Of a stretch of DNA of 64,000 nucleotides, positions 15,322-63,398 are shown one piece after another. The stretch spans positions 32,664,773 through 32,728,772 of the forward strand of contig OZ037766.1 of the NCBI GenBank assembly GCA_964035545.1, in the 5' to 3' direction. Under the pieces are notes generated by a model, which saw only the letters and a program-made list of their open reading frames with translations, was not told the DNA's origin and did not search any database. The position numbers and the translations under genes were made by a program. The DNA is from Bugula neritina (lineage: Eukaryota; Animalia; Bryozoa). Numbering within the stretch: the stretch's first letter is position 1; each line of letters opens with the position of its first letter.

Positions 15322-18300
15322 ATGATGCTGTTGAAAGAAATTGCTTTCAGCTTAGCTGTGGTGGTCACTGTTCTATTAGGTGAGTCACTATAACTTGCTC
15401 AGAGAAGCTACTCAGAAAGCGCAATTATACATGTATATTTTATTTTACTTTATTTTCAGCACAAATTTGTTTTTGAAAGAAAAAATTGCACCAATAATTT
15501 ATTTATTTTTAAAGTATTAGAATAACAAGACTAGGATATAATACTCTTTTTTACTCAAGTTCCAAAAGCAAATAGAGATTGCTGACTATACTTCAACTAG
15601 CTAAAACTATTTTTATGTTTAGGAGTTGAATTTCCTGAGTTTGTAATGCAAGTAAATATAAATTAGCTGAGAGTTAGACATCATGAAGCTATTAATAGAA
15701 CTGGTACAATGTATGAATTATACTTCTAGCTGTTAGCAGTGGAAAGCCAAGCTCCTATACTCTAACTAATAATGACAGAGATGTTAAGAATTGGGCTGGA
15801 GAAACTATACTTATGCCATCTGTTGATTTTACTATGTGCTTGTGGGTTAAAGTGAACCAATGGTATGGCTCCATGAAAAGTTCAGTTGTAAGCATGGCTA
15901 GACCAAGTAAGGGAAAGTAATATATATAATGTGTGTGTGTGTGCATGTGTGTGCGCGTGAAAGAACGTAATCTTGTTTTAACTTTTTTCACAAATGTAAT
16001 CTTGTTTACCCTCAATTTTGCAAAAAATATTATAGCCATTTAATTTGTTTGCAAACTTCAACACCATCACTTTAGGTTTTTATTCATTTTCAATTCACCT
16101 ATAACAGTCTCAGCTATATATCCAGTTAATACAGTTGTTTTTTTTTAAAATAGATGCTCCTGATTGGCTGCTGTTACGACTTGGCAAAAATGCTATCCGC
16201 TTAGAGTTTCAGTGGCGTTCTCTCATTTACGAAATTAACCTAAGTCTCAACCTGTGGTATTATATCTGCATATCTATTGAGAGAAAAGACAACTACAAAT
16301 ACAAGTACAAGGTGAGCTGTGTTAACAAGCAATGTCCAGTGCCTATAAGTTTCATTATAACTGCAGTATATTTTGTAACGTTGGTGGTAAAATTTTGTCT
16401 AAACTACATTAAATCATAGTAGTTACAATTTTTTTAGTTTTTTTACACTCAGACTTTTTAAATTTTTTAAAACTAACGATTTCTAAACTCAGAAGTTACA
16501 ATTCTGTAGCTGAATATGTTTACCGATTGGCCTAATTTGGTTCAAAATGGAAGCTACGCAGAAGAGTTTTCAAAACCTGCAGGAAATTCTGAGGCTGCAG
16601 CTTCCACTGGCCTGGTACTCTTCAGTGATCAAGACTCTATGTTTGGTAATTTAATTAATACTATAATATAATGATATAGTATATGTGTAGTCTAATAAGG
16701 TTCTCCCTAGAGAGCAAGTAACCACAATATCAATAATGTACAACATTAGGCGTTACAAATTAATATCTCAAAATATCATACTGGTTGCATATTGTTGGTG
16801 TTGGTATATTCCCTTCTATCCAGTCGATCTGTCAGTAAGCTGTAAGGCCCTTTATTTGTTACTTTGCAACTTTATAGTCTGAGGTTAGGCTCATATTTAC
16901 TTGGGGCAAACCTACCTAACTTGCTGGCTAACATTAGATGGTGCACCTAAAACATTCACTGATAAAAACTATTACATATGTTGTATATAGAAGGTGATTC
17001 TTGCAGTCAAATCAGTCCTGCTTTTCAACTTTTCCCCTTTAGAGTTGGCTTTCGTGGTAAAGGCTGCAAATGGTTTACTTGTATTTTTGTAACTTTTGTT
17101 TACTGTTGAAATATTACAGTTTTTTAATTAGTTTATGAATATGTCAAACACCTTGAAGGATGCAGTCAATTATTTGCTTCATCTTTTGATTGTACTAGGA
17201 TCTTTTGATGCGGAGCAAATGACGGTAGGATCCATTTCCTGTTTGAACATCTGGAACTCAGACTCCTACAAACTGAAAAAAGAAAGTTTTGCCGATTGTC
17301 AAACTGAAGGAGATGTGTTTACATTAAACCCTGGAGCCTTGAACCTTCATGGATCAATAGTTGAAGAACCTGGTGTAACGGAGACAACAGAATCTGGTGA
17401 TAAAGTTACTGTGCCTGCTACTACAACTACTGCACTCTCTACAGTACAACAAGCTGATACAGTTCCTGTTCATAGTGGTAAGGCTACTGTATCATAATTC
17501 ATCCTATAAGAATGCTATACTCTTGCATATGTCTAATCGCCTAACAACCTATAGCTGTAACTAAATTGTGCTGTATAACTTTGGATTTCTGAATGAAAGA
17601 TTCTACTGAACTTTCTAAGAGAATTTTTAAAGTTTAGCAAACTTGAGATCTGGTAAACAACCTCACCAGCATATTTGCATATTTTCTTAGTTGCTACTTA
17701 CATTTTTCGATTTTCTACTTCATAATTTATGTATTTGTCAATTATGTTATGCCTATAACTATTAACAACATTTTTATCAAGTTCAGTTGGTTGCTCAAAA
17801 TTGTAAACACTTCTGAGAATTATGGGTGATATTTGATAGGTAAATATTGTTCAACATGTTAACACTTTTTAATAGGTAAAGCTAGAGTGTTTCACTAATA
17901 ACTGTTAGCTTATAATATTTAACACCACAAACTCTTTGAGCCTAACAGTTTTACTTTAGGTCCTGCGTTATAATACAACAGTTATATAATTATAGTGGTC
18001 ATTTATAGTAACAGTTTAGCTCTAAGTTTAATAGGCAAAAATATTGTCTAGGTATCCTGTATTTTGATTCAATGTATGTGAAAGTGTCAGTATATAAAGG
18101 TATCAGTATGTGAAGGTATCAGTATATATGTGAAGGTGTCAGTATGTGAAGGTGTCAGCATGTGAAGGTATCAGTATATATGTGAAGGTATCAGTATGTG
18201 AAGGTATCAGTATGTGAAGGTATCAGTATGTGAAGGTATCAGTATGTGCAGGTGTCAGCTAGTATATGTGAATTCGGAGTCAGTATGTGGAGGTATCAGT

Positions 18301-21300
18301 ATATATAAAGGTATCAGTATGTAAAAGTATCAGTATATGAAGGTGTCAGTATGTGAAAGTATCAGTATATGGAAGTATCAGTATGTGGAAGTATCAGCAT
18401 ATATTAGGTTATCAGCAAGTTTAAGTATCCTGCAGTAAATTAATGCAAATATCAGCATGTTTGTACTCCATACAGCTGTGACTTTAGAATAAGAAACATC
18501 ATTCATTAACTTACTAGCTATACTTCATGCACAAACAATATCACTCTATCCTCTAGTTCTACTCTCCTTATATATGCATCCTATAAATATAATAAACGCG
18601 TCTTATACATGCCCTGCCTATTGCACTGTCTTTGTATATGACTGATGGAAAAGCTATTTAGCTTAATGAATAATTGCATTAAAACAATATTTTTCAAGTT
18701 TATTTAGATTTTTCAGAGCTTTTTAGCGGTTTTTTAATTTAGTAGATATTGAAATACCAGGTAGCTACACTGAAAGTTAAATAATAGATCGACATTATAA
18801 AGCTATTAATAGAATTGATACAATGCATGAATTATACTTCTATAGCTGTTAGCAGTGGAAAGCCAAGTTTCTATACTCTAACTAATAATGACAGAGATGT
18901 TAAGAATTGGGCTGGAGAAACTATACTTATGCCATCTGTTGATTTTACTATGTGCTTGTGGGTTAAAGTGAACCAATGGTATGGCTCCATGAAAAGTTCA
19001 GTTGTAAGCATGGCTAGACCAAGTAAGGAATATATTATAGCTATATATATTACATTATACTAATCAAAAATCTGTTTTACAAAATAAAAAATTTTTGATT
19101 CAAAAGAGCATTACTTTGTTGTTATACTTTTATAACTATGATCTATTTGTTTGCTTGTGATATTTTGCTAAAAAATTTTCAGTCAATTCATGTGCTCACA
19201 AACTTTAATGCAGCATTACTTTTACATTTTGTTTTTGTTGCAGGTCTTTCAATTCATTTAATGGCATCAGCCATCAATCTTTCACTTCAAATAATACTAA
19301 CTGTTTTGTTTTTGATTTAGTCGATTCTGATTGGCTGGTGCTGCAACTTGGCAAACATGTAGTCAACTTACAGTTTCAGAGTCGTCTATTCAATTACGAA
19401 GCTGACCTTAGCCTTAACCTGTGGTATTATATCTGCACATCTATTGAGGAGGTAGACAACTACAAATACAAGTACAGGGTGAGCTGTGTTAACAAGTATA
19501 TACGTAATCATATAGTAGAAATCAAAACTATAATTGACTTCCTTTTACTGATTATGTTCTCTTGTGAATAAGATAGAATGTAAACCAGTTTGAAATACAC
19601 AACAATAATGCTTGCCTGAGCCCATCAAGCTGGTTGATTACAACACACCGCAGTAACTTCCCTTGTGCACTTTGTGAGTGTCAATTTAAAATTTTGAATA
19701 AAATTGAGCTAAAGAAAATAAATAAAGCCAAAAGCAACTATAATTTGTTGAAAGTAAGTTTAACTTTAATTAAAGGGTTAAAGAATTGCCAATTAATAAT
19801 TATAGCAAATGATAAACAATGCAGTGTAGCATAATATACAGTGGAACTTTCAAAGTATAATATACCATGTTGTTGTGTTGATTAGTGGTTTTTAATTATG
19901 ATTACATTGCAACTTTGATTTACCTCAATACTTATGTTTAAAACTGTTGTTATAATTGCTGAAAAATCAAAAAGACTGGTTGGCAACTTTATGTAAAAGT
20001 CTACATCTATTATAATGTTGGCAATCTTTAGTTATGCAGAAGTTATCGAAAAGGTTTTTTCTTCAATTGGATTCTGCTGCTATCGATTATTCATATTTCA
20101 TAACTGTATAATAATTTGCAACTTTGGTAGTAAAACTATAATGTCTAAACCGTATTAAATCATAGCATTTACATTATTTTTTTTCTTGTTTTACACTCCT
20201 ACATTCTAACTTTATTAAATTTAACAATTCTCAACTTCAGAAGTTACAATTCTGTAGCTGTATGTGTTTACCAATTGGCCTACTTTGGTTCAAAATGGAG
20301 GCTACATGGAAGAGTTTTTAAAACCTGCAGGAAGTTCTGAGGCTACAGCTTCCACTGGCCTGGTACTTTTCAGTGATCAAGACTCTTTGTTTGGTAATTT
20401 GATTAATACTACAATATAATGATATATAAACATATATAATCAGATAGAATAATATATAATAATATATTATAGTACGCGTATTTAAACAGGGTTCTCCCTA
20501 GAGGCCGAGAGCAAGTAACCCCAATATCAATATATGGCAGCAATTTAGAATTTACAAAAATCTCAAAATATGATGTTTGCATTTTGTTGGTATTGGTATT
20601 TATTCCCTTCTACTCAGTCAATCTGCCTTTTTTTTGTAAATGAATTTTTTACGAGTCACTAGGCACTATATTGGTGGTGTCTACATATGCGTGTATACTG
20701 CTCATGGAAAAGTTTCCCTGGTTGCTATGAGCTGAAAGCCACAAAACTATATTATTGTGTTACTTTATAGTCTGAGATTCAACTTATCTACTAATTGGAC
20801 AACTTAGCCTACTCAACTTGCTGACTAACATAATATTATATGGTGCTTCAACAAATAAAAATATCATCTGTTGCACTTGAAATTCAAACCTTTTTGAGAA
20901 AAAAAATCATATTTTGTTCTTTTAACTAAGAGAGATCTCTCTGGTCTCAAAGAGTGAAGGTTTCTCCATTTTAAGTTCCATGATGTTTGTGTTTCTATCA
21001 ATATGACAATAAAATAGTAAAATATTCAATTTATTATTTTATACAGATTTACTTTATATTTTGATTGTGCTAGGATCATTTGAGGCGGCACAAATGACGG
21101 TAGGATCCATTTCCTGTTTGAACATCTGGGACTCCGGTTTCAACAAATTTCAAAAAGAAAGTTTTGCCGATTGTCAAACAGAAGGAGATGTGTTTACATT
21201 AAAGCCAGGAGCCTTGAACCCTCACGGATCAATAGTTGAAGAACCTGGTGTAATGGAGACAGCAGAATCTGGTACTACAGTTACTGTACCTGCTACCGCA

Positions 21301-63165: not shown

Positions 63166-63398
63166 TCAAACTAGTCTATAGTATGTAACACCCTTAGCAG
63201 CTTCCAAAGAGATTGAGCAGTACCCAGGTCCAGTCTCACATCTCTCATCTTGTTGGTGGTAGTTTACATTCACACAGCCAGTAGATATACAAACAGACAG
63301 ACAACTTAGCAAGGAAGGATGACTCAGAGGTTGAACAGATAATCTAGGCATCTGGAATCCTGGATGGATCTCAAACTTCTGCCAGATGTTTGTCAGAT
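63166..63398 (-). CDS. Gene P5: terminal PAN exon of a further family member; the rest presumably lies beyond the right edge
   Basis: ttgtag|AT CTG ACA AAC ATC TGG... open to TGA, near-identical to the other PAN exons. Downstream sequence at ~62520-62640 is homologous to ~49160-49270 downstream of P4. Confidence 0.8.

Follow-up and report, generated by a model that had tools for sequence, protein, structure and literature searches.

Gene layout of the pentraxin-PAN cluster

We analysed a 64,000-nucleotide (nt) stretch of Bugula neritina DNA (positions 32,664,773 to 32,728,772 of contig OZ037766.1, assembly GCA_964035545.1; hereafter the window), which carries a cluster of modular genes whose predicted products combine pentraxin-like domains with a C-terminal PAN/apple domain. 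The window is AT-rich (G+C about 32%) and is located on C2, a chromosome-scale contig of the 216-Mb assembly. Modules were mapped by running the window's own exon peptides against it with tblastn (a self-map), together with splice-site analysis, and exons were joined in silico from window coordinates for frame checks, ratios of non-synonymous to synonymous substitution (dN/dS), trees and a hidden Markov model (HMM). Throughout, the window genome is compared with the public Bugula neritina assembly, including VXIV02003241.1 (L029), which we refer to as the sister species.

The self-map resolves four recurring exon types and a fifth, PAN, type, arranged in strict order on both strands. Module copies match each other at E values of 1e-10 to 1e-90, far beyond chance. 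The window contains ten four-exon pentraxin modules (three of type A, six of type B and one of type C), five complete PAN exons, two PAN fragments and four signal-peptide (SP) exons.

Gene g1 (15322-31113, plus strand) has the layout SP-A-A-B-B-B-PAN, its 22 exons joining into a frame of 1268 amino acids (aa) that lacks an internal stop. It begins with an SP exon of 19 codons plus 1 nt and a phase-1 donor (15322-15379), followed by module A1 (15730-17477; exons 15730-15906, 16154-16311, 16510-16645 and 17199-17477), the last exon of which encodes a linker of ~40 aa rich in Thr, Ala and Pro. Module A2 (18846-21352) again has four exons, and its exon 1 is 99% identical in nucleotides to that of A1. 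Three B modules of four exons each come next, B1 (22789-24530), B2 (25608-27688, with a (TC)n microsatellite at 27171-27358 in intron 3) and B3 (28764-30273), and the 22-exon frame ends in a PAN/apple exon with the stop codon (30875-31113).

Two further genes in the window are complete and open. Gene g2 (32364-36495, plus strand), SP-B4-PAN, has six exons encoding 320 aa (SP 32364-32421, B4 34209-35650, PAN 36263-36495), and g4 (49472-58182, minus strand), SP-C1-B6-PAN, has ten exons encoding 579 aa (SP 58182-58125, C1 57591-55136, B6 52822-50199, PAN 49710-49472). Between them lies g3 (40110-47575, plus strand), SP-A3-B5-PAN (SP 40110-40170, A3 40562-42914, B5 44063-46821, PAN 47337-47575), which is broken in one exon, exon 4 of A3. 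At the end of the window a PAN exon on the minus strand (63169-63396) belongs to g6, whose remaining parts, B7, a D-type module and an SP exon, lie past the window end at about 64431-70026, giving SP-D-B-PAN. Beyond g6 follows g7, SP-A-B-PAN, one intron of which carries an insertion of about 8.7 kb; it lies in the second intron of module B8 (about 74200-82900 on the window scale, past the end), and exon 3 of B8 is only partly delimited. With two further two-module genes 9-41 kb upstream, the cluster amounts to about 130 kb and about ten genes. The layouts listed in an initial annotation of the window, SP-A-A-B-B-B-PAN, SP-B-PAN, SP-C-B-PAN, SP-A(stop)-B-PAN and a fifth paralogue seen by its PAN exon, are all recovered here as g1, g2, g4, g3 and g6.

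Modules are symmetric four-exon units

Exon lengths vary little between modules (E1 174-183, E2 155-161 and E3 133-142 nt; E4 204 nt in B, 279 nt in A and 285 nt in C), and splice sites are canonical, with an AG acceptor and a GT(A/G) donor on every exon except one broken exon. Intron phases follow the order 1-E1-1-E2-0-E3-1-E4-1, the second of the three internal introns (E2/E3) being in phase 0. Module length is 666-768 nt (222-256 codons) and divisible by three in all. The four SP-like exons (starting at 15322, 32364, 40110 and, on the minus strand, 58182) hold 19-20 codons plus one base and end in phase 1, the phase in which the PAN exons begin. The description of the pentraxin module as a four-exon unit bounded by phase-1 introns is thus borne out at all boundaries, and the same phase at both module ends and at the SP and PAN boundaries means that units can be duplicated, lost or skipped in frame. 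Genes hold from 1 to 5 modules (counts of 1, 2 or 5). Exon shuffling classically works on symmetric phase-1 modules, and the locus is a clean natural example of their evolution, with one copy caught decaying.

That copy is A3; 11 of the 12 modules checked are intact. Exon 4 of A3 (42654-42914) carries a 2-nt insertion near 42812 with stops, the source of the stop reported earlier for this paralogue; in addition, the linker has lost 21 nt and the donor reads AT in place of GT. Its counterpart in the sister species is open and has kept the donor. A3 is hence a decaying module. The frame of g3 survives omission of A3 exon 4 or of the whole of A3 (322- or 478-aa products).

Pentraxin identity of the modules

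Pfam, profile and Protein Data Bank (PDB) searches of window exons were made exon by exon. Exon 1 gives a sub-threshold match to Laminin_G_3 at profile positions 12-39. Exon 4 of B1 matches Pfam Pentaxin (PF00354) at positions 134-169 of 194 with 18.6 bits (E 0.0016; cut-off 25 bits), and Pentaxin was matched by 6 of the 10 exon-4 pieces. The alignment of the exons with pentraxin domains is collinear.

A profile built from the ten exon-4 peptides and run against 1.8 billion (1.8e9) representatives matched 39 proteins. Among them are multi-pentraxin proteins of the hemichordates Ptychodera and Saccoglossus and of the amphioxus Branchiostoma, retrieved at E 1e-27 to 5e-5, whose own Pfam Pentaxin domains score 1e-60 to 1e-230; the Ptychodera flava match has five Pfam Pentaxin domains (1e-157). 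With the HMM of the joined module, each of the five Pentaxin domains of protein P0003 is aligned at 35-41 bits over model positions 29-216 of 222, and a pentraxin domain of P0003 in turn matches the solved structures of NPTX2, NPTX1, PTX3, SAP and CRP at 1e-39 to 1e-21, NPTX2 being the best (1.7e-39). When PDB sequences were searched directly, the exon-4 profile matched NPTX2 at E 0.011, and P0006 and the exon 1, exon 3 and PAN profiles gave chance matches only. P0042, an orthologous B module of the sister species that is 82-89% identical to the window B module in exons 1, 2 and 4 and 66% identical in exon 3, matches Pfam Pentaxin with 44.7 bits (E 1.6e-11), above the cut-off of 25. Judged by this chain of profile matches, the modules are homologous to pentraxins over the whole domain, and the pentraxin identity proposed for them on first inspection is upheld by HMM. 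As to a jelly-roll fold, the ESM Atlas's own model of P0041, another sister-species protein, aligns to a cnidarian pentraxin cluster with a template modelling (TM) score, by target, of 0.81, and an AlphaFold model of part of P0041 is of low confidence (below).

The likeness to NPTX1/NPTX2 and CRP/SAP comprises this whole-length homology, the positions of a cysteine pair, an E/D-Q-D calcium loop and most other calcium ligands. Exons 1 and 2 each hold an invariant cysteine, at positions aligned with CRP Cys36-Cys97. We take these to be the canonical pentraxin cysteine pair, and they would form an intrachain disulfide. Unlike those proteins, the bryozoan chains hold one to five domains and a C-terminal PAN, lack the coiled-coil N-terminal part, keep the signature HxCxS/TWxS only in part and have an extra cysteine pair in exon 4.

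Predicted calcium ligands

CRP binds two calcium ions via Asp60, Asn61, Glu138, Gln139, Asp140, Glu147 and Gln150 (PMC6503050). The positions aligned with these ligands fall in three places: exon 2 opens with D/N-N, exon 3 closes with E/D-Q-D, and exon 4 opens with D/E..Q. On this alignment B4 and B5 carry every ligand, and C1 has lost all of them. Since calcium-binding residues are kept in most A and B modules, calcium-dependent binding is the likeliest working mode of the domains.

The C-terminal PAN domain and predicted secretion

The PAN exon of g1 scores 18.8 bits against PAN_1 (PF00024; E 0.0014, cut-off 21.4), and 12 of 13 family members match this profile at E<=0.1 (best 1.8e-5). An AlphaFold model of the PAN exon, made with the 13 family sequences, has a mean predicted local distance difference test score (pLDDT) of 86.5. 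Of the 50 best PDB matches to this model, nearly all are PAN/apple modules or related ones (MANEC, Wsc1), and the best 30 have TM scores of 0.69-0.76. They include leech antiplatelet protein, the N domains of HGF and plasminogen, the apple domains of factor XI and the apicomplexan PAN lectins Sarcocystis SML-2 and Toxoplasma MIC4, which share the fold at a probability of 1.0 with about 10-18% identity; unlike these modules, the bryozoan PAN is a single C-terminal module placed after pentraxins. Four cysteines are invariant in 13 of 13 PAN sequences and show the core spacing expected of PAN modules. By profile and modelled fold, the last exon is a PAN domain, as first proposed.

Beyond its first residues, the signal exon (19-20 codons) of each gene encodes 73-88% hydrophobic residues. 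Between the last PAN cysteine and the end of the frame lie 25-30 residues, with no hydrophobic C-terminal tail. Hence the products are predicted to be secreted, which agrees with the layout assumed in the initial annotation. B modules have two conserved N-glycosylation sequons, and at the end of A, C and D modules there is a Thr-, Ser-, Pro- and Ala-rich linker of 27-42 residues.

Constant and variable exons in B modules

The four exons of B modules have diverged to very different degrees. Between modules, exon 1 is 82-94% and exon 4 is 88-94% identical in nucleotides, against 57-92% for exon 2 and 62-84% for exon 3, and synonymous divergence (dS) is 0.01-0.3 in exons 1 and 4 versus 0.2-2.4 in exons 2 and 3. 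Pairwise dN/dS in exons 2 and 3 lies between 0.2 and 0.8, mostly 0.2-0.6. Values of dN/dS >=1 in exon 4 were considered as a sign of positive selection and rejected; they derive from 0-5 silent changes and fall largely within the exon's variable head and tail. In the cores of exon 1 (about nt 11-100) and exon 4 (about nt 20-165) hardly any site varies, silent ones included, among eight B paralogues and two sister-species copies (for example window 22800-22890 and 24347-24490).

Trees of exon 1, of exons 2 and 3 together and of exon 4 differ five- to ten-fold in depth and differ in topology too. Exons 2 and 3 give well-supported (B5,B6) and (B2,B3) groups, and the exon 1 tree pairs B5 with B8; (B2,B3) and (A1,A4) are sister pairs among the modules. 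The pairwise homoplasy index (PHI) test on concatenated exons of B1-B7 is significant (p=0.0005), and PHI on single exons is not. Along exon 1, blocks of shared variants switch partners.

Comparison with the sister species extends this pattern. Its exon 4 is no closer to the positional orthologue than to other paralogues, with dS of 0.12-0.24 against a within-genome mean of 0.12. Between g2 and its positional orthologue EB796_022399, dN/dS in exons 1-4 is 0.42, 0.21, 0.23 and 0.39, dS is 0.17, 0.54, 0.77 and 0.21, and the introns are about 17% different. Over g2 34619-35177 and L029:12290-12833, the dS of exons 2-3 is thus ~3x that of exons 1 and 4, an excess between orthologues that rests on about 23 silent changes and hints at imported sequence or a locally raised mutation rate.

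We read these data as concerted evolution of exons 1 and 4, with old exon 2-3 variants maintained and occasionally exchanged between copies under purifying selection. Exons 1 and 4 of B modules would be kept near-uniform, probably by gene conversion, and exons 2 and 3, which on the pentraxin alignment would encode most of the stretch between the calcium-ligand positions, would carry the exchanged variants. The family as a whole would evolve by birth-and-death of in-frame four-exon units. The module shuffling suggested at the outset therefore holds as duplication, loss and partial exchange, seen in the 1-5 modules per gene, the sister pairs, the decay of A3, the PHI result and a sister-species module without a counterpart (L012, below). 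It does not hold as whole-module swapping, since exchange occurs at the scale of exons (constant 1 and 4, variable 2 and 3). Likewise, the idea of a diversifying system stands as a pattern of germline evolution and not as a shown diversification mechanism, with dN/dS in the variable exons below 1. The coexistence of uniform and ancient exons within one domain makes the locus a tractable case for gene conversion versus maintained diversity.

A bolder proposal, which we regard as speculative and rather unlikely, is that the B modules constitute a germline cassette system in which near-invariant exons 1 and 4 serve as homology anchors for the copying of exon 2-3 cassettes. If so, exon 2-3 variants would be copied among a dozen or more modules. 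With in-frame gain, loss or skipping of modules added, lineages or even individuals would differ in their sets of multivalent binders, a pentraxin-based counterpart of the diversified invertebrate lectin families. The excess of dS in exons 2-3 between g2 and its orthologue, next to introns that differ by about 17%, is one hint in this direction.

Family extent and relatives

Genome-wide there are at least 26 exon-4 and 19 PAN matches, and every PAN match follows an exon 4 at a distance of a few hundred bases. Outside the cluster, contig C7 holds four single-module genes, C3 has two loci, and a further two are on C2 at 31.18 Mb; genes with more than one module were seen in the C2 cluster only.

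Sister-species proteins are 83-89% identical to exons of the window genome. The members KAF6033926.1 (EB796_007767), EB796_007765 and EB796_022399 all belong to the pentraxin-PAN family, EB796_007767 being 83-89% identical to the four single-module C7 genes. EB796_022399 has exon lengths identical to those of g2 and introns 82-84% identical, and a two-module-PAN gene adjoins it. The sister-species exon 4 with dS of 0.12-0.24 (above) has flanks collinear with g3 at 78.5% identity. Module L012 of the sister species lacks a positional orthologue in the window genome, which indicates that modules have been gained or lost between the species. The public models of these genes are incomplete: P0006 lacks exon 3, P0041 starts inside exon 1, and the PAN exon of the g2 orthologue has been assigned to a neighbouring 172-aa model in L029 (VXIV02003241.1). 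A 748-aa model with two modules and a PAN has no Pfam annotation on record. All sister-species members are annotated as "hypothetical" and none has been named or studied; these fragmentary models would gain from correction.

Tandem pentraxins in one secreted-type chain occur elsewhere, in Ptychodera flava XP_070546223.1 (five domains), Saccoglossus XP_006812501.1 (nine) and Branchiostoma XP_078594462.1 (five). These proteins are uncharacterised and 20-25% identical to the bryozoan modules, and a PAN domain was detected in none of them. As such hemichordate and amphioxus proteins carry 2 to 9 pentraxin domains, the rule of one pentraxin domain per chain, from which the initial annotation had set out, is not universal. 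The domain kinds themselves and tandem pentraxin chains without PAN were already known. What is new is the Pentaxin(n)-PAN architecture and the pattern of constant and variable exons within one domain. The combination of Pentaxin and PAN is absent from the nearest large ESM Atlas clusters listed, and our literature searches on pentraxins or PAN proteins of bryozoans found no published description of the family, in agreement with the initial annotation, which knew of none.

Metagenome contigs in the European Nucleotide Archive contain exon-4 relatives at 31-50% identity, five with a PAN-like exon downstream. These five (L019, L023, L024, L025 and L027, from ERZ1740056-72) are low-coverage eukaryotic contigs with an exon-4 relative at 31-40% identity and the PAN-like exon 450-600 nt later, an arrangement that places the pentraxin-PAN pairing in at least one more distant organism. 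The architecture is apparently restricted to bryozoans and this one further relative.

Proposed function and alternative explanations

Read from sequence, the cluster and its relatives are probably real genes of a family specific to the bugulid bryozoan lineage, encoding secreted, multivalent, calcium-type lectin-like binders and evolving by birth-and-death and sequence exchange. The products would be secreted, glycosylated chains with one to five pentraxin domains in a row and one C-terminal PAN/apple domain. Their pentraxin domains may bind an extracellular ligand (a glycan, phospho-ligand or protein) in a calcium-dependent manner, multivalency would arise from tandem domains within one chain, and the PAN domain could be a second binding or anchoring module. 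Ligand binding of this kind would suit a role in humoral recognition, that is, innate defence or surface/glycan sensing, which we infer to be the most probable role. For bryozoans, a large colonial phylum, immunity and self/non-self recognition have hardly been described in molecular terms, and an unannotated secreted pentraxin-PAN family is a concrete, sizeable candidate set for bryozoan recognition.

Several observations weigh against this reading. Single window exons score below the curated Pfam cut-offs, though at collinear profile positions. The signature HxCxS/TWxS is only partly kept in exon 2, where Tyr or Phe stands in place of His and Ala, Ile or Val in place of Trp, the Cys being invariant. 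An AlphaFold model of P0041:1-190, a shortened sister-species protein, reached a pLDDT of only 56.8 and gave meaningless Foldseek matches; its input alignment combined exon pieces with hemichordate domains, and the model was not used for any conclusion. A and B modules other than B4 and B5 have one or two calcium ligands substituted, conservation being read from alignments. The variable exons show no sign of overall positive selection (pairwise dN/dS <1). Intron ends beside exons 1 and 4 are near random similarity and not homogenised, which means that gene conversion would have to be short-tract or filtered by selection; alternatively, the silent sites of exons 1 and 4 may be under constraint. 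Finally, no public RNA run for the locus was found: the single run with the stretch, X1, is DNA, its contigs covering introns and containing no GT..AG joints. Transcription, and the joining of five modules in one g1 message, are predictions from the splice sites and frames.

X1 is probably another individual or haplotype. Against window 27400-31300, 60% of sampled words are present in X1 and its intron contigs differ by 0-3.5% from the reference; paralogues inflate the depth over exons.

Structural or adhesive extracellular proteins are one alternative, with tandem jelly-roll domains, mucin-like linkers and the PAN domain building a glycoprotein scaffold in the cuticle, frontal wall, biomineral matrix, larval or rhizoid adhesive or mucus coat. 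PAN is common in cuticle and matrix proteins, and the nearest Atlas structural clusters include nematode and arthropod cuticlin/PAN proteins; Thr/Pro/Ala-rich mucin-like stretches occur in A, C and D modules and in the C7-type genes, and dN/dS below 1 fits ordinary constraint. We nevertheless consider this explanation unlikely. Calcium-ligand positions are kept in most modules, exon 2-3 variants that have diverged strongly are maintained side by side, and copy and module number turn over rapidly between the sister species, features that suit binding proteins better than scaffolds.

Less likely still is that the cluster is a polymorphic self/non-self or sperm-egg locus, its alleles differing in module content and encoding determinants of allorecognition or gamete recognition, as the initial annotation had also entertained. 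Bryozoans are colonial and can fuse, and the locus combines variable module number, mosaic exons and a decaying copy, with a second DNA data set differing from the reference by about 0-3.5% across introns. Intron differences of this size, however, are ordinary for marine invertebrates. Known invertebrate allorecognition receptors are mostly membrane proteins, and the proteins here have no membrane anchor; the positional orthologues compared have the same exon structure in the sister species, and dN/dS is below 1.

It is similarly improbable that the modules are alternative-splicing cassettes from which g1 and its relatives would make many isoforms with differing subsets of modules, the five-domain chain being only one of several products. 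All boundaries are in phase 1, and A3 exon 4 or A3 can be skipped in frame in g3, which would allow it; yet each gene has its own SP and PAN exons, and splice sites are equally strong at all exons. A decaying, largely non-functional array of duplicated exons, suggested by the broken A3 exon 4, two PAN fragments, the retro-element-sized intron insertion in B8 and abundant microsatellites, is very hard to reconcile with an open frame of 1268 aa over 22 exons and two further complete frames, 11 of 12 modules intact, dN/dS well below 1 between orthologues and the same exon structure in the sister species.

The favoured reading, a family of secreted multivalent binders, invites comparison with the snail FREPs, amphioxus VCBPs and sea-urchin 185/333 proteins, which likewise form tandem clusters, are of secreted recognition type, have constant and variable parts and show signs of sequence exchange. 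The likeness is by analogy, the domains being unrelated. Somatic or individual diversification has been claimed for FREPs, VCBPs and 185/333, whereas the pattern described here for the bryozoan family is one of germline evolution.

Other features of the window

Two PAN fragments lie near the end of the window. That at 58987-59133 (plus strand) covers the C-terminal two thirds only and is probably a dead remnant; the other, at 62006-62083 (minus strand), is a remnant with stop codons within the match. Between them, at 60170-61271 (plus strand), is a small gene with a signal-like first exon and C-type-lectin-like cysteine/tryptophan motifs. Its identity is tentative, Pfam matches being weak only (a C-type-lectin-like poxvirus family at E 0.004, and EGF models).

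At the other end, window 2300-12200 holds long minisatellite arrays with units of roughly 15-60 nt, open in up to five frames. The resulting open reading frames of 170-290 aa have no Pfam match, and the G+C of this region (38-43%) is above that of the rest of the window. Long microsatellites of (TC)n, (TA)n, (CA)n and compound type lie in introns and spacers of the cluster, at 41700-42150, 50380-50960, 53100-53360 and 56619-56774 in addition to the (TC)n repeat of B2.

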